The notes under the pieces were generated by a model, which saw nothing but the letters and a program-made list of their open reading frames with translations, did no database searches and was not told the DNA's origin. From NCBI GenBank assembly GCA_950097015.1, contig CATNEN010000003.1:9300001-9364000 (forward strand): a stretch of DNA of 64,000 bases. Direction: 5' to 3'. A program made the translations under genes and the position numbers. The stretch comes from Macrostomum hystrix (taxonomy: Eukaryota; Animalia; Platyhelminthes). Below are positions 329 to 7,166 of the stretch, piece after piece; position 1 is the stretch's first letter, and each line of letters starts with the position of its first letter.

Positions 329-1551
329 CAACTCCGAGATGTTAAACCCACACTGGGAAAAGATGATCTTTACAGCACACTATTCTGGTTGTTAACACGC
401 GCTTAAATTTATATGAACTGTGAGAAGCATTTCAAATAGCATGATACGATACAGTGCCCTGTACACTGTGCTATAACAAAGGCATACTTATAATTTAAGT
501 TTAGTGCGGAAAAATTATTTGGATTAATTGATTTGATAAAAAAACGCTTTAAGCTATTATTCCAAAAAATTTATAGACAAAAATTTGCAAGTAATACCGA
601 AAATGCACGAATGTACCTATTCAAAAAATAGTGATAAGGGCGTTGACCGAAAAATAGTAATGTAGTCTCTGATCTGTCGTTCGTTTGGGTACATCGACGA
701 TGTAACCAGCGACTGAGTTTATTCACCAGTTTCGCAATAAAGGTAGTGATGAAGTCTCATCTAAAATGTCATCCTTTGATATATGAAATATCTAAATTGG
801 CATTTTTTATTCTATATATGGTCATTTACCGAAACAATCTAATCTTATAAAAATAACTTATTGAATCGGGCTTTATAATAAATTAGGTATTAAAAATGAT
901 TATTGAAGAAAATTCCTTCAAATTTTAAACCTTTAATGCATTTCTTCACAACTTACTATTATTATATTAAGCTTCAAGATCTTTGTAAAGTTTCTATTTA
1001 ATAACAAGGAACCAAGATTTGTTAGTTCTTTTTGTTGCAAACTATTATGCTTTTTGTTGATGTGCCACAAAATCCAACAATGCAATGTATGACTATGTTT
1101 GTTGCATAATTTGAAATCAATTTTTTTGCAAAAGCTAATGCTCCAGTAGAATTTGTTTTGAACTGTAGCTGGAGGTTCAATGAGTTATGGTTATACATAG
1201 CATTATAATAATACAATTCTTATTTATACTTTTACTGATTTAAAATTGCCTTTTTAGTTTGTATATATTAATTTATACTATATGATATTTAATGTAGTTT
1301 GTTTGACCTGAATTTCTAAAAAGTATAATATTTGAGTTAAAAATAGAGGGATAACAGCTTATTAAAACATTTTTTATAGTAACCATATAATAGAAAGTTT
1401 TTTACTCTATTTACCTTTTTGAGGATCAATTTTTTTTAATTTTTAACAATTTTCTGTGTTATTTGTATTACAAGCAATCCACATTTATTTTTTTTACCTT
1501 TAAAAGCTTACAATAAATGTTACTAAAAATTGATAAAAATATAATTTTCAG

Positions 1552-4500
1552 TATCAGGCCAAACTTTTAGCTGCTAATCTACAACAGGCTATTGCAAGCC
1601 ACAGCTTATCTGAGGCAGCCTGTCTAGTGGAAAAATTATGTCAAACTAATCAGAAAGTAAGTTTTTTAAGCTGTTGTTTTTACAAAGATGTTAATTAAAT
1701 TTAAAGTCTCTAAAGTTTTATAAGTGTCACACACTGAGCAGTTAGACAAATCACATTCCATAGTGATCTAAAAGCAGAATTTATCTTCACCATCAGGTGA
1801 CAATTTATCCAGATTGGTCTGAGAGACTCGTACCATTTGATCAGCAAGGCCCACAGCAGCAGCTGCAGCAGCCTGCCCAATTTCTTGTATCTGTTAGACT
1901 ACAATCCCGCGATGGGTACCTTAGTAGGCCACTTCGCTTGTGCATTCCACAAGGTCTGGATGCCACCATTGCTGATCTCAAAGAGCAACTATTATTGACA
2001 TTTGGATTGCCAGTATCTGCTCAGCGTTGCATTGTAAATCACCAGCTGCCTGAGGATGCTACTAGGCTAAGGGATCTGGCTCGACTAGCCAACTCTGGAC
2101 TGTTTGGCATCGAAGCTGTGGTCTATTTACTGCCTAAGTCGAATTATGAAGATGACAATGTTCCAATAAGTGAACGTTGGGAACGATTGACACCAGAGAG
2201 ATTAGATCTGATTAAACAAGAACTGATTGAAAAACGACAAGCTGCTGAGGCGGCTGCAGCGGCTGCGGCAGCTGCTGATGATCAAGGAGCACTTCTCGAT
2301 GATGCAGCATTGAGGGTAAGATAGTGAGTCCTGCTTCGCTTATAATTAAATCTTTAGACATAAATTACAAAAGGAAGACAATCGTTATTTCTCTGATCCT
2401 CTCCCAGATCTTCAGATTTAGATCTCCGCTCTCCCAGATCCTCAGATTCAGATCTCGACTCTCCCAGATCTTCAGATTCAGATCTCCACTCTCCTAGATC
2501 CTCAGATTCAGATCTCCGCTCTCCCAGATCCTCAGATTCAGATCTCCACTCTCCCAGATCCTCAGATTCAGATCTCCGCTCTCCCAGATCCTCAGATTCA
2601 GATCTTCACTCTCCCAGATCCTCAGATTCAGATCTCGACTCTCCCAGATCCTCAGATTCAGATCTTGACTCTCCCAGATCCTCAGATTCAGATCTTGACT
2701 CTCCCAGATCCTCAGATTCAGATCTTCACTCTCCCAGATCCTCAGATTCAGATCTTGACTCTCCCAGATCCTCAGATTCAGATCTTCACTCTCCCAGATC
2801 CTCAGATTCAGATCTTGACTCTCCCAGATCCTCAGATTCAGATCTTGACTCTCCCAGATCCTCAGATTCAGATCTTCACTCTCCCAGATCCTCAGATTCA
2901 GATCTTCACTCTCCCAGATCCTCAGATTCAGATCTTCACTCTCCCAGATCCTCAGATTCAGATCTCCGCTCTCCCAGATCCTCAGATTCAGATCTCCGCT
3001 CTCCCAGATCCTCAGATTCAGATCTTCACTCTCCCAGATCCTCAGATTCAGATCTTGACTCCCAGATTCGACTCTGCCAGATCCTCAGATTCAGATATCC
3101 TTTAGAGAATCCTATAGATCCTATCTTTTCTAGATAACATCTCCTTTTTACTTTCTTTAGAACTATATGCGACAAATAGACAAAAATTTTAGTTTTTTTA
3201 ATTCAGATTTTTAACGCTTTAAATGCTTTGACATGTAATCTTATCTTCTTGATAAAAGAACAAACTTTTGTGTCTCAATTAATTTAGAAGCTAATTTAGT
3301 TGAAAGGTGGCTTTAAAGGCTAGAGTGATTTTAGTATTTTTCTAGCTACATAAAAGTTTTGTTAGACAAAATCTGTTTTAATCTAATGTACGTTTACTTG
3401 CGAAATAATTGAAGTATTACGGATTTTTCGAAATAAAACGATTGGTCAAAATTCTTTTAGCCTGGTTGGCAATGCCCCACCTGCACCTGCTGGAATCCGC
3501 TGCGTCGGCCCGGCTGTCAGATTTGCGCAACCGATCGACCAGCCGATGCATTGGAGCTGTGGGCTGATGCAGCCGCAGCTGACGACGACTACCTGGAAGT
3601 TGCTGATGTGCTTGACGACGAACCAGATAATGTAAGCTCTGAGGCTGAGGTGGGTGGTTGTAAATATAGACTGGTTGGGGTGGTTGTCATTATAGAATAT
3701 GTGGGGTGGGTGTCACTAAAGAATATGTGGGGTGGGTGTCATTATAGAATGGGTGGGGTGGGTGTCAGTATAGAATGGGTGGGGTGGGTGTCAGTATAGA
3801 ATGTGTGGGGTGGGTGTCAGTATAGAATGGGTGGGGTGGGTGTCAGTATAGAATGGGTGGGGTGGTTGTCAGTATATAATAGATTGGGTGGTTGTCAGTT
3901 TAGAATGGATGGGGTGGGTGTCAGTATAGAATGTGTGGGGTGGGTGTCGCTATAGAATGGATGGGGTGGGTGTCAGTATAGAATGGGTGGGGTGGGTGTC
4001 ATTACAGAATGGATGGGCTGTGTTGTCGGTGTCAGCGGATTGTTTGCCATTTAAAGTCAGGTGTCCCTGAACCCCGTGTATCTTAGCCTGGCTGGCGATG
4101 TCCCAACTGCACACTGATGAATCAGCCGCACAGGCCTGGCTGCTCGGCGTGTGCGGCAGACCGGCCCGCAGACTACCAGCCGCCAGATGGCTATGAGCAG
4201 CCCGATGACCCGGAGCTGGAGCAGCAGCGGCAGCTTTTGGAGCAGACGATAGCTCAGGAAATGCTGGACAAGGTATTTTGAGTTTTGTATTCGGATTTTT
4301 TGCTAAACAGAATGCTTGTAGCTCAGTGATAAGAGCTTCACTTCACTTCACCCGGGAGTAAAATTGCTACCAACCTGGGCAGATATGGATATGCCGGCCT
4401 CCCTTGACCACGTTTAGGAGAAAAAGTTGCGTTCAACTTTTCGATGGCTCAGGTTGTGCTCCTGGCTGTACTCTAGTCCAAATCGTCTAATTGCAACTTT

Positions 4501-6966
4501 ACAATACGATTATAATATAAACATCAGATTTTCCTTATCCGATATGTATCGAAATATGTATTTTTTCAGTCAGATTTTCCTAATCCGAATGTGTCTGAAA
4601 AGGAATTCTGTCTAACTTTTTGAATTCTGTTTGAATTATTTTTCTAAACTTACAGCCGGGCTGGTTGTGTCCAACCTGCACGTATAAAAACGCGCCCTAC
4701 AGGCCAGGCTGTCAGGTGTGCGCAGCCGATCGACCTGAGGACTATAAGCCACCGGACGGCTACCAGCCGCCAGCTGAGGAGATCGCCAGAGCTCGGCAAC
4801 AGCAGCGAGAATATCTGGAACTGGTCAATGTGAGTTGAAGACAACTGCTGGCAGTATAAAATGCCGAAAATATAATGTGAAGGGGTATTTTAGAGACGGA
4901 TCAATTAATGAGATCAGAATTAATAAGTGATTTGGAGAGACTTGCATGATGATTGCTATGAGGTTCAAATAGACGGCTATATGAGATACGGATAAACTGC
5001 TATTTGGAGATAAAAGCATCCGATTTAGATAGACAGTTAAGTTTTTGATAATTGGTTAAGCGTGCATGAGATTCGGAGATCCAGGTTTCAGATGTGGAGA
5101 GATGGGGTATGATATTTCAATGCATAGGGGTATGAGATTTATTATAATATGTATGTGAGCCAAAGACACGTGTTATAGAGTCGAAGAGACAGGTATGGGA
5201 TTCGGAGATTCGGGTATCAGACTTGAAGATTCGGGTATCAGACTTGAAGATTCGGGTATGAGGTTTGGAGATACAGGTATGAGGTTTGGAGATACAGGTA
5301 TGAGGTTTGGAGATACAGGTATGAGATTTGGAGATGCAGGTATGAGATTTGGAGATGCAGGTATGAGGTTTGGAGATACAGGTATGAGATTTGGAGATGC
5401 AGGTATGAGGTTTGGAGATGCAGGTATGAGGTTTGGAGATACAGGTATGAGATTTGGAGATGCAGGTATGAGGTTTGGAGATGCAGGTATGAGGTTTGGA
5501 GATACAGGTATGAGGTTTGGAGATACAGGTATGAGATTTGGAGATACAGGTATGAGGTTTGGAGATACAGGTATAAGATTTGGAGATGCAGGTATGAGAT
5601 TTGGCATTATACAGGTATGAGATGGTACAGCTGTTTGAGGATTTACATATTTGATAGGAAGCGATCCTGGGAGATTTAGACAGACTTAAGAATATGAAAC
5701 TGATAATAGAGACAGAATTATAGTAAGACACCAATTATTATTCTGTGATTTGAGATATAATTTACTTTTACCTTAATAGGACGGCCTGATGCAAAAGGTG
5801 ACCCGTCGGTTTGACTGCGGCCACAAGGAGAAGATCTCGTGGTACGCGAATTTTCGCAGAGTCAACAACCAGTTCTGCTCCCAGTGCTGGTCACTGGCTG
5901 CCCAGATACACAAGGAGAAGCTCAACGCTGAGGAGGAGCTAGAGGGTGCCGCCCCGGTTATTAAGAGAACCCCGCTGACTGAGGACAATGAGGACACGGC
6001 TGTTGAGTACTTTAAGGTTAGGAAAATTATATTTATGGTTCGCTAGAATTAACCGCAGCCGTACCGACCTTCTTCATCCCACCCCACTCAAGCCCACAAC
6101 TTCCCGATCCCAACTCAATTACCATTTCTAATCCCACAACATTCTCAATCCCCACTTCTAACCCACAACATCCTCAATCCCCATTTCTTATCCCGCAACA
6201 TCCTCAATACCCAATTTCTTATCCCACAACATCCTTAATGTCCCATTTCTTATCCCACAATTTAACATCCTCAATCCCCATTTCCTATCCCATAACATCC
6301 TCAATCCCCATTTCTTATCCCACGACATCCTCAATCCCCATTTCTTATCCCTTAACATCCCAATCCCCATTTCTTATCCCACTACATCCTCAATCCCCAT
6401 TTCTTATCCCACTACATCCTCAATCCCCATTTCTTATCCCACAACATCTCCAAACCCAGGTGTACGATCGCGTCATGCGGTACGTGAAGCCGGAGCATGG
6501 CATCAAGGTGCAGATTCAAAGCCTAGAGCGCATTGAGAACAGTAGATTAGATGGACGCCTATTTGAGTGCTACAATCTGCTACAGAAGAAGGACTGTATT
6601 CCTGAGCTGCTCATTCATGGCACTCGCAACGAAATCGCCGAGAAGATAATTCAAGAAGGCTTTCGCGTTGGCCAGGGTGGCATGTTTGGCGCCGGGATCT
6701 ACTTTGCCACGGATACTACTAAAAGTGCCCAGTATTGCCGCGAGAATGGAATCAAATCTTTGCTTCTATGCGATGTTGTGCTAGGCAAGACTAAGGTTTG
6801 CGCCGCCCCTAGGCAGGATTTGAATCTGCAATTAATCACAGCCGAAGGATACGACTCTGTGTTTGCTAAACGCAATACAAATCAACTAGGCGGCGTGGCC
6901 AACGATGAGTACATTGTCTATCGATCTGAACAGGCCACGCCTAGGTATCTGGTAAAGTTTCAGTGA
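1552..6966 (+). CDS. HOIL-1L/SHARPIN-like LTM-UBL-3xNZF protein fused to a PARP (ART) catalytic domain; start exon not identified
   Basis: Exons 1552-1656 (LAANLQQAIASHSLSEAACLVEKL, LTM-like), 1797-2315 (UBL: TIADLKEQLLLTFGLPVSAQRCIV...VVYLL), 3461-3631 (PGWQCPTCTCWNPLRRPGCQIC; alternative donor 3649), 4087-4272 (PGWRCPNCTLMNQPHRPGCSAC), 4656-4829 (PGWLCPTCTYKNAPYRPGCQVC), 5780-6016, 6460-6966 (HGT...GGMFGAGIYFA..SAQY...NDEYIVY). All introns are GT..AG and phase 0, giving an open frame of at least 632 aa. Confidence 0.82.
2400..3100. repeat. Intronic minisatellite, 30-nt unit (ctcccagatcctcagattcagatcttgact)
   Basis: About 22 tandem copies; explains ORF 2665..3105. Confidence 0.95.
3690..4020. 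repeat. Intronic G-rich minisatellite, ~26-nt unit (gggtggggtgggtgtcagtatagaat)
   Basis: Tandem copies visible just after the NZF1 exon. Confidence 0.9.
5190..5600. repeat. Intronic minisatellite, 21-nt unit (aggtatgaggtttggagatac)
   Basis: Tandem copies; explains ORFs 5117/5173/5195. Confidence 0.95.
6110..6450. repeat. Intronic minisatellite, ~30-nt unit (tcctcaatccccatttcttatcccacaaca)
   Basis: Tandem copies ending about 9 nt before the PARP-exon acceptor at 6459. Confidence 0.9.
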
Positions 6967-7166
6967 CTAGAAATTCGTCTTTTTATAAAAAAAAGTCAAT
7001 GATCAATGTTTTCAATCTGTAATTACTCTAGAGAACTATTTCCTACAATGCCTACTAAAGACGGATTAAATGGGCGACTTCCAGTTTTCGAGGCCTTTTA
7101 AAACCGCAAATTTTATACACATTATTAAATTAGATGTGTATAAAATTTGGCTACAAATAGCCAAAA

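Follow-up and report, generated by a model that had tools for sequence, protein, structure and literature searches.

A single transcribed gene of the flatworm Macrostomum hystrix joins the LTM-like helix, UBL and NZF fingers of an RBCK1/HOIL-1L-type protein to a PARP domain. Its predicted product of 633 aa is read from one frame, intact over seven exons, in a window of 64,000 nt (the whole stretch of DNA analysed here: contig CATNEN010000003.1, forward-strand positions 9,300,001 to 9,364,000; positions below are those of the window). We consider it fairly probable that this is a functional, expressed chimeric enzyme, in which an RBCK1-derived adaptor would tether the PARP to LUBAC-type platforms and ADP-ribosylation would take place there.

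Gene structure and transcript

1551..1552, + strand: trans-splice acceptor; AG ends at 1551, spliced leader ...TTGCATG attached
1552-1656, + strand: exon 1, phase 0, 35 codons; LTM-like helix-loop-helix
1797-2315, + strand: exon 2, phase 0, 173 codons; end of the LTM strand (VTIYPD), HOIL-1L-type UBL, helical Ala-rich linker
About residues 29-111 of exon 2, + strand: UBL, from PDB sequence, BLASTP and fold matches
3461-3631, + strand: exon 3, phase 0, 57 codons; NZF1
4087-4272, + strand: exon 4, phase 0, 62 codons; NZF2 with RBCK1-type tail
4656-4829, + strand: exon 5, phase 0, 58 codons; NZF3 with HOIL-1L-type tail
5780-6016, + strand: exon 6, phase 0, 79 codons; N-terminal extension of the PARP module, with knuckle
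6460-6966, + strand: exon 7, phase 0, 168 codons and stop; PARP catalytic domain
6616-6618, + strand: H53, triad His (exon 7)
6700-6702, + strand: Y81, triad Tyr, in GIYFA (exon 7)
6907-6909, + strand: E150, triad Glu (exon 7)
6967..7100, + strand: 3' UTR; the longest transcript contigs run ~94 nt past 7100

All seven exons were found, joined into one open frame as had been predicted, in transcript contigs of 2012-2151 nt with 0 mismatches (three public runs from one study), and these contigs lack precisely the six predicted introns, all of them GT..AG. Both junctions singled out for checking in the original prediction, 4829/5780 and 6016/6460, are spanned, and a single mRNA carries both halves, so the NZF exons and the PARP exons belong to one gene and not to two. 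The 2151-nt contigs covered 6458-7100 and then continued into further sequence. Because each exon is present in the genome as a single copy at ~100% identity, the contigs do not derive from a retrocopy. Expression was steady, with a transcript word depth of ~25-39 across the three runs.

Upstream of 1551, three contigs carried 23 extra letters corresponding to the 3' end of the M. lignano spliced leader, which is 35 nt long (PMC8629364), and the M. hystrix genome contains spliced leader RNA genes whose donor is GTAAG. The gene itself lacks an ATG; the leader's terminal ATG, which is in frame, serves as the start codon. The introns are packed with minisatellites, and the surrounding region abounds in shuffled gene families.

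The N-terminal half

The N-terminal half is colinear, over exons 1, 2 and 5, with the M. lignano protein P0003, whose RBR matched human RBCK1 with an E-value of 2.8e-68. As judged by sequence, P0003 is a true RBCK1 ortholog and the N-terminal half of the fusion protein is RBCK1/HOIL-1L-derived. Exon 1 aligned colinearly with residues 12-41 of P0003 (BLASTP, 37% identity, E 3e-4). The Pfam LTM model (PF25393) gave no match to exon 1, alone or in the genome scan, and missed the flatworm RBCK1 genes too; the Pfam ubiquitin model gave none in exons 1-2 and likewise missed bona fide flatworm RBCK1. By inspection, the equivalents of HOIL-1L L15/A18/V19 in exon 1 are L/A/I, all hydrophobic.

The top PDB match of the UBL in phmmer was the LTM-UBL of RBCK1 (5y3t_A, E 0.0024), with 2lgy, 7v8e and 4dbg also in the top five, and exon 2 was 46% identical to residues 68-136 of P0003 (BLASTP, E 4e-14). 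In the AF2 model the UBL core had a pLDDT of 72-84 and beta-grasp topology, and Foldseek ranked the HOIL-1L UBL structures 5y3t_A and 7v8e_D in places 1-2. The kinship to RBCK1 proposed for this domain was thus borne out, the HOIL-1L UBL being the best solved-structure match by both sequence and fold, and we assign the domain to the HOIL-1L type, noting that among solved-structure matches the lead of HOIL-1L over plain ubiquitin was small.

Pfam zf-RanBP (PF00641) was detected in exons 3, 4 and 5. NZF3 with its tail (exon 5) matched PDB 3b08_B, the HOIL-1L NZF with linear di-ubiquitin, over both core and tail with an E-value of 2.6e-13, the next-best family being TRABID at 0.009, and this exon aligned with residues 208-261 of P0003. 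In HOIL-1L, R208, P209, Y228-x-P230, E233, E234 and R237 serve in proximal-ubiquitin contact and in packing of the core on the tail, and the NZF C-terminal tail is unique to this protein (PMC10511788). NZF3 preserves all of these residues, that is, it keeps the T-Y, R-P, YxP and E-E motifs and the tail R, and has Ala at HOIL-1L K205. By sequence, NZF3 is an NZF with the HOIL-1L-type tail, to which HOIL-1L owes its linear-chain specificity. NZF2 (exon 4; PF00641 E 1.2e-6, above the cut-off) is encoded by an exon 65% identical to exon 5. NZF1 (exon 3; PF00641 E 0.0014) has an intact core, 67% identical to that of NZF3, with T-C instead of T-F as the ubiquitin-contact pair and an acidic, divergent tail. 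Of the close likeness to HOIL-1L originally claimed for NZF2 and NZF3, the part concerning NZF3 held for core and tail, and NZF2 does have an RBCK1-type tail, but with altered YxP spacing.

In RBCK1 paralogs the RBR follows the NZF. Here the PARP exons follow, no exon gave a RING or IBR match in Pfam, and the mRNA stops after the PARP exon; an H-Y-E PARP domain occupies the RBR position of the paralogous RBCK1 genes, in agreement with the proposed replacement of the E3 module.

The knuckle-PARP module

The C-terminal 247 aa (exons 6-7) form a zinc-knuckle and PARP module. Pfam PARP (PF00644) matched exon 7 with an E-value of 5.6e-25 and 88.5 bits (cut-off 26.7), the best PDB sequence match of the domain was tankyrase (E 3e-11), and its AF2 model (pLDDT 89) had tankyrase in the first Foldseek rank with a TM-score of 0.84-0.85. 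H53, Y81 and E150 were invariant across 22 family members. The H-Y-E triad is therefore intact, as predicted, with one correction: the Tyr of SAQY, earlier named as the triad residue, is a second, non-invariant tyrosine, and the canonical one is Y81 in GIYFA. Sequence and model together identify an H-Y-E class PARP catalytic domain of ART fold, although such a triad is no guarantee of poly-ADP-ribosylation.

Exon 6 carries an invariant C-G-H...C-S-x-C-W knuckle and a ...TAVEYFK linker, and the columns of the knuckle and of ...EYFK were invariant in five aligned members. In paralogs, including locus L009, this extension adjoins the PARP domain without an intron, the module being contiguous, and it also stands directly before the PARP domain in M. 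lignano P0013 and P0009. The CGH...CSQC segment noticed earlier is thus present, and its alignment with PARP-family paralogs places it in the PARP module; its reading as a RING1 was rejected on the same alignment. The knuckle resembles an NF-X1-type finger element, and P0014 has such fingers upstream. Other copies of the module in the genome were 58-73% identical to it and those of M. lignano 48-64%, and they share its invariant residues; its closest paralogs are fusions of a ZNFX1 domain, an SF1 helicase and a PARP. Exons 6-7 belong to a knuckle-PARP family expanded in Macrostomum.

Origin and candidate partners

By exon shuffling, the adaptor half, with its LTM-like motif, its UBL and three tandem copies of an NZF+tail exon, was probably joined to a ~245-aa module, CHCC knuckle plus H-Y-E PARP, from the lineage-expanded PARP family. 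Against paralogs, dN was 0.21-0.38 with dS saturated, and synonymous sites were saturated between the duplicated NZF exons and between the PARP exon and its paralogs; the substitution pattern indicates an old duplication under long-term purifying selection. No ortholog of the fusion gene was found among the annotated proteins of M. lignano, and the gene has so far been seen in one species. The combination of LTM-UBL-NZF with PARP was not found in the protein libraries searched or in the literature examined, which agrees with the original view that no described family has this architecture.

Elsewhere in the genome are two RBR-bearing RBCK1 genes, additional LTM-UBL-NZF genes and LTM-bearing candidate partner genes. 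HOIP-like genes are expanded (at least 9 LDD copies), and one of them is a 1233-aa ORF with NZF, IBR and LDD, whose UBA_HOIP match scored 21.8 bits against a cut-off of 22.4. Sharpin_PH had no match above noise in the genome.

Proposed function and alternative explanations

We infer docking into LUBAC, reading of M1 chains, catalysis and mono- or poly-ADP-ribosylation as follows. Through its LTM/UBL end the protein would attach to HOIP-like linear-ubiquitin ligases, to a SHARPIN-like partner with an LTM, or to both. Met1-linked ubiquitin chains would be bound by the HOIL-1L-type NZF+tail units (NZF3 at the least), and the PARP could then ADP-ribosylate proteins at ubiquitin platforms, its targets being LUBAC components, substrates that bear chains, or ubiquitin. 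A role in innate-immune or cell-death signalling is probable, given that ZNFX1-type helicases of this genome carry the same PARP module. On this view the protein would be an alternative third subunit that writes ADP-ribose in place of the ester-linked ubiquitin of HOIL-1L. A further step seems unlikely to us: an alternative LUBAC with the fusion protein replacing HOIL-1L, its LTM bound to a SHARPIN-like subunit and its UBL to one of the many HOIP paralogs, and with linear-ubiquitin platforms and possibly ubiquitin directly ADP-ribosylated. If such a complex exists, animal innate immunity would have a naturally hard-wired writer that combines M1-ubiquitin and ADP-ribose signals.

The strongest competitor of the tethered enzyme, possible in our estimation though somewhat doubtful, is an ADP-ribosyltransferase guided by ubiquitin chains outside LUBAC, the RBCK1-derived half serving only as a polyubiquitin reader, with avidity from its three NZFs, and the partners of the LTM and UBL having been lost or changed; proteins near any suitable ubiquitin chain would then be marked, as by PARP10 via its UIMs. 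In its favour, no other N-terminal signal comes near the NZF+tail homology (E 2.6e-13), the LTM signal is weak, the UBL shares only 46% identity with that of flatworm RBCK1, and triplication of the NZF suggests selection for chain binding. However, the LTM-like helix and UBL remain in frame and undegenerated despite saturated dS (NZF duplicates; PARP exon against paralogs), the hydrophobic positions equivalent to L15/A18/V19 are, on inspection, kept (L/A/I), and candidate partner genes are present in the genome.

A different substrate is also conceivable, and we rate it improbable: the fusion would bring to ubiquitin platforms a PARP acting on RNA or DNA ends, or on ubiquitin or ADP-ribose-ubiquitin hybrids. 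The H-Y-E triad and tankyrase-like fold, typical of protein-modifying PARPs, argue against this, while the paralogs would fit it, the closest combining a ZNFX1 domain, an SF1 helicase and a PARP and the module sitting mostly on ZNFX1-type RNA helicases, as would the likeness of the CGH...CSxCW knuckle to an NF-X1-type finger element. Ubiquitin-ADP-ribose hybrid chemistry, which reportedly exists according to published work, points the same way. Least credible of all is a lineage-specific chimera that arose neutrally by exon shuffling and is transcribed without any selected function. The frame of 633 codons is unbroken over seven exons, every catalytic residue and zinc ligand is kept, dN is 0.21-0.38 with dS saturated against paralogs, and expression is steady in three runs (word depth ~25-39); against these stand the restriction to one species, with no ortholog among M. 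lignano proteins, and the minisatellite-filled introns in a region where shuffled gene families are common.

Much current work concerns the cross-talk of ubiquitination with ADP-ribosylation, with Deltex/PARP9, ADPr-ubiquitin esters and tankyrase-RNF146 as examples, and in mammals LUBAC is not known to meet PARPs other than in trans. A HOIL-1L docking and linear-chain-reading half coupled to an active-looking PARP, as predicted here, could offer a simple system for studying the effect of ADP-ribosylation at linear-ubiquitin platforms and would supply a ready-made tool, an M1-chain-targeted ADP-ribosyltransferase. Seen beside the ZNFX1-PARP fusions and the expanded HOIP-like genes, the gene indicates that signalling proteins of innate-immune type are remade in flatworms through the shuffling of a PARP effector module.

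Comparison with known systems

Like tankyrase 1/2, the fusion protein has H-Y-E and the string GGMFGAGIYFA, and in both the ART fold lacks a preceding helical regulatory domain; however, their PARP domains are only 25-29% identical, and the CHCC knuckle extension is specific to the Macrostomum family. The segment of tankyrase 1 that we take to be its catalytic-domain zinc-binding loop had no counterpart and no Cys/His pattern in the alignment. Ankyrin repeats and SAM, which define the tankyrase clade (PARP clade 4; PMC2964712), are absent from every exon in Pfam. Tankyrase is thus the nearest solved structure, as the earlier label 'tankyrase-like' implied, and membership in the tankyrases was ruled out.

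PARP10 and PARP9-DTX3L also tie an ADP-ribosyltransferase to ubiquitin recognition or ubiquitin enzymes, and PARP10, a UIM-bearing mono-ART, reads K63 chains. These systems, unlike the fusion protein, use a UIM or a Deltex partner for ubiquitin, belong to a PARP clade of H-Y-I/L type and are without a LUBAC-derived scaffold. PARPs with a UIM or with other domains of the ubiquitin system have been catalogued (PMC2964712). The ZNFX1-helicase-PARPs and short PARPs of Macrostomum (those of this genome, and P0009-P0013 of M. lignano) have the same PARP module, including the knuckle, but with ZNFX1 and SF1 helicase, other N-termini or a short MG-start leader before it, and none has a UBL or NZF.

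SHARPIN likewise has the order LTM-UBL-NZF without an RBR, but it has an N-terminal PH domain and its NZF is without the HOIL-1L tail. The fusion protein has no PH domain, because the spliced leader is joined immediately before the LTM-like helix, and its NZFs carry the tail, which rules out identity with SHARPIN. RBCK1/HOIL-1L has the same N-terminal order of LTM-like helix, UBL and NZF with the HOIL-1L-specific tail, and in the RBCK1 paralogs NZF and tail are likewise a single exon. The fusion gene differs in having an intron between LTM and UBL, where RBCK1-A has none, in carrying the NZF+tail exon three times, and in ending with a PARP module where RBCK1/HOIL-1L has the RBR.

Gene structure and transcripts

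The exons of the gene at window positions 1552-6966 were found by translating pieces of window 1400-7100, and their boundaries were set by hand; searches, folds and comparisons were run exon by exon, with single-exon queries. As the original prediction had described, seven phase-0 exons (E1-E7) read as one open frame containing three NZFs and a PARP domain, and Pfam agreed.

Exons of the gene (window coordinates)
E1, 1552-1656, forward strand, phase 0: LTM-like helix
E2, 1797-2315, forward strand, phase 0: UBL
E3, 3461-3631, forward strand, phase 0: NZF1, RanBP2/NZF zinc finger (Pfam)
E4, 4087-4272, forward strand, phase 0: NZF2, RanBP2/NZF zinc finger (Pfam)
E5, 4656-4829, forward strand, phase 0: NZF3, RanBP2/NZF zinc finger (Pfam)
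E6, 5780-6016, forward strand, phase 0: knuckle of the knuckle-PARP module
E7, 6460-6966 with the stop, forward strand, phase 0: PARP catalytic domain (Pfam)

All six introns are GT..AG, and the PARP domain of E7 scored 88.5 bits (E 5.6e-25; cut-off 26.7). Four sequencing runs from one study contained about 35% of the words sampled from the 5.9-kb stretch, of which the exons make up 1899 of 5901 bases (about 32%). In three of these runs one contig per run, 2012-2151 nt long, spanned E1-E7 with 0 mismatches and omitted precisely 1657-1796, 2316-3460, 3632-4086, 4273-4655, 4830-5779 and 6017-6459. Since the genome has just one copy of each exon at an identity of about 100%, these contigs represent cDNA and do not come from a processed copy. 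The 4829/5780 and 6016/6460 junctions, which the original prediction had singled out for checking, were thus both seen in three runs, and the NZF and PARP exons belong to one transcript, not to separate genes. Two of the gene's junctions were also seen in run X1 of a second study. Other transcript contigs matched the window only at 6679-6714 (coding for GGMFGAGIYFA) and 2241-2277 (coding for poly-Ala) and then diverged, so the words at these two places are common to expressed paralogs or unrelated genes, which matters for k-mer-based estimates of the expression of this gene.

Most of the length of four of the six introns consists of minisatellites (2399-3061, 3652-4017, 5185-5623 and 6114-6448), all different, with units of 30, 26, 21 and 30 nt in 11-22 copies each. 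Intron 6 splits the knuckle-PARP module at a place where no paralog has an intron, and this suggests its gain, or its expansion, by tandem repeats.

A start codon supplied by the spliced leader

In all three transcript contigs 23 extra letters precede position 1551, and these letters plus the G at 1551 are identical to the final 24 nt of the 35-nt spliced leader of Macrostomum lignano (PMC8629364). The terminal ATG of the leader is in frame with E1, and no further in-frame Met occurs upstream of E4. The gene itself therefore lacks a start codon: the leader ATG is the only possible start for the UBL-containing protein, which consists of M and 632 residues (633 aa), with the start codon supplied in trans. 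The 24-mer of the leader has 29 exact copies in the genome (220.45 Mb in 42 contigs searched). Tandem arrays of spliced leader RNA genes, with a spacing of about 11.6 kb, were located on contig 15 (G000:C15:9730-33043), contig 17 and contig 42 (loci L037 and L038); the two copies read, one on contig 15 and one on contig 17, both have the leader at its full 35 nt with a GTAAG donor after it. We also observed a dispersed copy (L003) that differs by one mismatch and whose ATG is followed by GC.

An N-terminal half of RBCK1 type

When the UBL part of E2 was compared with 1.84 billion representatives by HMMER, four hits were obtained, none with a PARP domain, and the only true relative among them was P0003 (M. 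lignano PAA76215.1). The C-terminal RBR region of P0003 matched human RBCK1 (E 2.8e-68) and its NZF matched that of HOIL-1L; judged by its sequence, P0003 is an RBCK1 ortholog, with the order helix-UBL-NZF-RBR. Three exons of our gene aligned to it colinearly: E1 with residues 12-41 (37% identity, E 3e-4), E2 with residues 68-136 (46% identity, E 4e-14) and E5 with residues 208-261 (54% identity).

The comparison with solved structures agreed with the RBCK1 type proposed for the UBL and NZF parts. By sequence, the top hit of E2 was 5y3t_A (E 0.0024), which is the LTM-UBL chain of HOIL-1L in the LUBAC core, and three further RBCK1 UBL entries were among its top five. From a shallow alignment of six rows AlphaFold2 modelled E2 with a beta-grasp core at pLDDT 72-84, and Foldseek placed the HOIL-1L UBL at ranks 1-2 (5y3t_A; 7v8e_D, TMt 0.86), with ordinary ubiquitins close behind. 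E5 matched, over both core and tail, 3b08_B (E 2.6e-13), the NZF of HOIL-1L in a crystal structure with linear di-ubiquitin, while the next NZF family, TRABID, reached only E 0.009.

The NZF tail has been described as unique to HOIL-1L, where R208, P209, Y228-x-P230, E233, E234 and R237 contact the proximal ubiquitin or hold core and tail together (PMC10511788). In the alignment with 3b08_B, NZF3 retains equivalents of all of these; T201-F202 is replaced by T-Y and K205 by Ala. In NZF2 the tail is mostly retained, with Y-E-Q-P in place of Y-x-P, and in NZF1 the ubiquitin-contact pair is T-C and the tail is acidic and divergent. The predicted likeness of NZF2 and NZF3 to the HOIL-1L NZF and tail thus held fully for the named residues in NZF3 and for most of the tail of NZF2, except its Y-x-P spacing. 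The three NZF exons are 65-67% identical among themselves, as compared with 43-61% to the RBCK1 paralogs; being mutually closest, their sequences point to an internal exon triplication.

The Pfam LTM model did not match E1, either alone or in the genome scan, which says little because the model also misses the genuine RBCK1 genes in the two flatworms. The E1 helix-loop-helix lines up with P0003, as does the VTIYPD strand after it (...VRVYPD in P0003), and by inspection the equivalents of L15/A18/V19, critical in HOIL-1L (PMC6044281), are L/A/I. The assignment of E1 as an LTM is uncertain.

The PARP module and its relatives

The closest solved relatives of E7 by sequence were tankyrase 1 and 2 (E 3e-11), then PARP4, PARP1 and PARP2. 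Its AlphaFold2 model (pLDDT 89.2) matched tankyrase catalytic domains with TM 0.84-0.85 at 25-29% identity. In an alignment of 22 relatives H53, Y81 and E150 (numbered within E7) were invariant, so the triad is intact as proposed; however, its Tyr lies in GIYFA, and the Tyr of SAQY, which the original prediction had given as the triad residue, is not invariant. "Tankyrase-like" is likewise correct only as regards the nearest solved relatives. Tankyrase identity was rejected: ankyrin repeats and SAM, by which the tankyrase clade is defined (PMC2964712), are absent from the gene, and in the alignment with E7 the Cys/His-containing loop of tankyrase had no counterpart.

The CGH...CSQC segment of E6 had been set apart from the ART domain. 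In paralogs the E6 sequence abuts the PARP domain from upstream with no intron, and the spliced E6/E7 junction, ...TAVEYFK/VYDRVMRY, is continuous sequence in paralogs and in the M. lignano relatives P0013 and P0009. C-G-H...C-S-x-C-W and ...EYFK are invariant among five aligned members of the module. By this conservation E6 belongs to the PARP module, with the segment as its conserved knuckle, not a RING remnant. We had considered it as a vestige of RING1 (site-2 ligands C3-H4-C7-C8), which was rejected as it is conserved upstream of PARP in paralogs with no RBCK1 part.

Seven paralogs of E7 in the genome are 58-73% identical to it, and others, more distant, 39-40%. The nearest of the paralogs lacks an RBCK1-like part; it comes after a Cys-rich ORF that contains a long APVALQAAQLKPPPP repeat. 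Two paralogs scanned with Pfam are intronless ORFs of 1694 and 1803 aa with a ZNFX1 domain, an SF1 helicase (AAA_11/AAA_12) and PARP at the end; in a third, outside that scan, the same knuckle-PARP module ends a 1786-aa open frame. Three others have a helicase and then two PARP domains. The expanded set of ZNFX1-PARP fusions is possibly an antiviral sensor-effector family.

PARP-module paralogs in the M. hystrix genome
C3:10062854-10165657 (L009, L011, L014, L015, L035): cluster of the closest paralogs (58-73%), about 0.76 Mb downstream of the gene, on the contig that carries it
L029:2085-7166 (C3:4.52 Mb): long intronless ZNFX1-helicase-PARP ORF
L030:1332-6740 and L013 (C8:3.43-3.46 Mb): L030 the same; L013 the 1786-aa frame with the knuckle-PARP module at its end
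L016-L018: ORFs with a helicase and two PARP domains

Three short M. lignano members (P0010, P0012, P0013; about 230-250 aa) start with MGNCYSK, MGLFHSK or MGNSKSK. These starts are similar to N-myristoylation signals, and the three proteins may represent the module in a stand-alone form anchored to the membrane. In the comparison of E7 with its paralogs dS is saturated and dN is 0.21-0.38, and likewise among the NZF exons. Since saturation leaves the dN/dS ratio not computable, we can say only qualitatively that the parts of the gene are old and have been under purifying selection.

Candidate LUBAC partners

Genes for LUBAC-type components were found elsewhere in the genome.

Candidate LUBAC components in the M. 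hystrix genome
C24:4552275-4561451: RBCK1 gene with RBR
C38:5624209-5628464: RBCK1 gene with RBR
C10:395020-395882 (L034), near-duplicate C41:282098-282961: LTM-UBL-NZF gene, no RBR detected nearby, weak Pfam LTM hit
C38:5633358-5634586: LTM-UBL-NZF gene, no RBR detected nearby, above-cut-off LTM hit at C38:5634479, beside the NZF
C11:5373096-5397348 and C39:12492561-12507208 (L022-L026): HOIP-like LDD loci

The genes with no RBR detected on contigs 10/41 and 38 are candidate SHARPIN-like partners; the Sharpin_PH domain was not found in the genome. The HOIP linear-ubiquitin-chain-determining domain (LDD) had ten genome matches, nine above cut-off; a 25-kb stretch of contig 11 holds seven of the ten in tandem. 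One HOIP-like copy is a 1233-aa intronless ORF with NZF, UBA_HOIP (21.8 bits, cut-off 22.4), IBR and LDD. All Pfam UBA_HOIP matches in the genome were below this cut-off (20.4-21.8 bits), that in the HOIP-like ORF being in the expected position; a PDB phmmer search with the UBA_HOIP region matched the NZF only. Given the RBCK1, LTM-UBL-NZF and HOIP-like genes, LUBAC-type machinery is present and expanded. A linear-ubiquitin ligase expansion of this size is unusual. Co-folding of the UBL (window:1797-2225) with the UBA region of this HOIP-like ORF (L026:3040-3582), run without controls and with an uncertain partner fold, scored 0.00, a value that counts neither for nor against binding.

Distribution of the architecture

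No UBL+NZF+PARP protein was found in annotated-protein libraries within length windows, the only flatworm genome searched being that of M. hystrix, and literature searches for this architecture or for flatworm LUBAC gave nothing relevant; within this scope, the earlier statement that no described protein of this kind is known stands. A word-indexed protein search with the RBCK1-type N-terminal half matched only the query itself, and the ESM Atlas returned generic PARP clusters and nothing else. Against proteins of 92-294 aa, the PARP exon found M. lignano members of the PARP family at up to 64% identity, which is below the in-genome paralogs, so that none of them is a clear ortholog. Absence elsewhere is weak evidence, because the search tools are blind to longer or unannotated proteins. 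In its passages on ubiquitin, zinc fingers and tankyrase, the PARP family survey lists combinations with UBCc, UIM, U-box and WWE, and none with UBL+NZF (PMC2964712). We rate the gene as a new domain architecture made of known families, so far in one species.

Proposed function

The best-supported reading is that of an RBCK1-derived adaptor which carries a PARP effector where the RBR would be. Such a protein would be recruited to linear-ubiquitin platforms and/or HOIP-like ligases, and local ADP-ribosylation would follow. Among the alternatives, an ADP-ribosyltransferase guided by ubiquitin chains independently of LUBAC is unlikely but deserves the most weight; it would share the chain-reading NZFs and the PARP module, and dispense with the HOIP-like and SHARPIN-like partners. 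It is improbable that the PARP substrate is non-protein, or ubiquitin itself, and we consider a neutral chimera very improbable indeed.

The mechanism proposed for the adaptor with a PARP effector builds on what is established for the homologous parts: HOIL-1L is tethered to SHARPIN and HOIP by its LTM and UBL (PMC6044281), the NZF and tail read M1 chains (PMC10511788), and H-Y-E PARPs are the class with demonstrated activity (PMC2964712). In the RBCK1 paralogs, too, the NZF and its tail are encoded by one exon.
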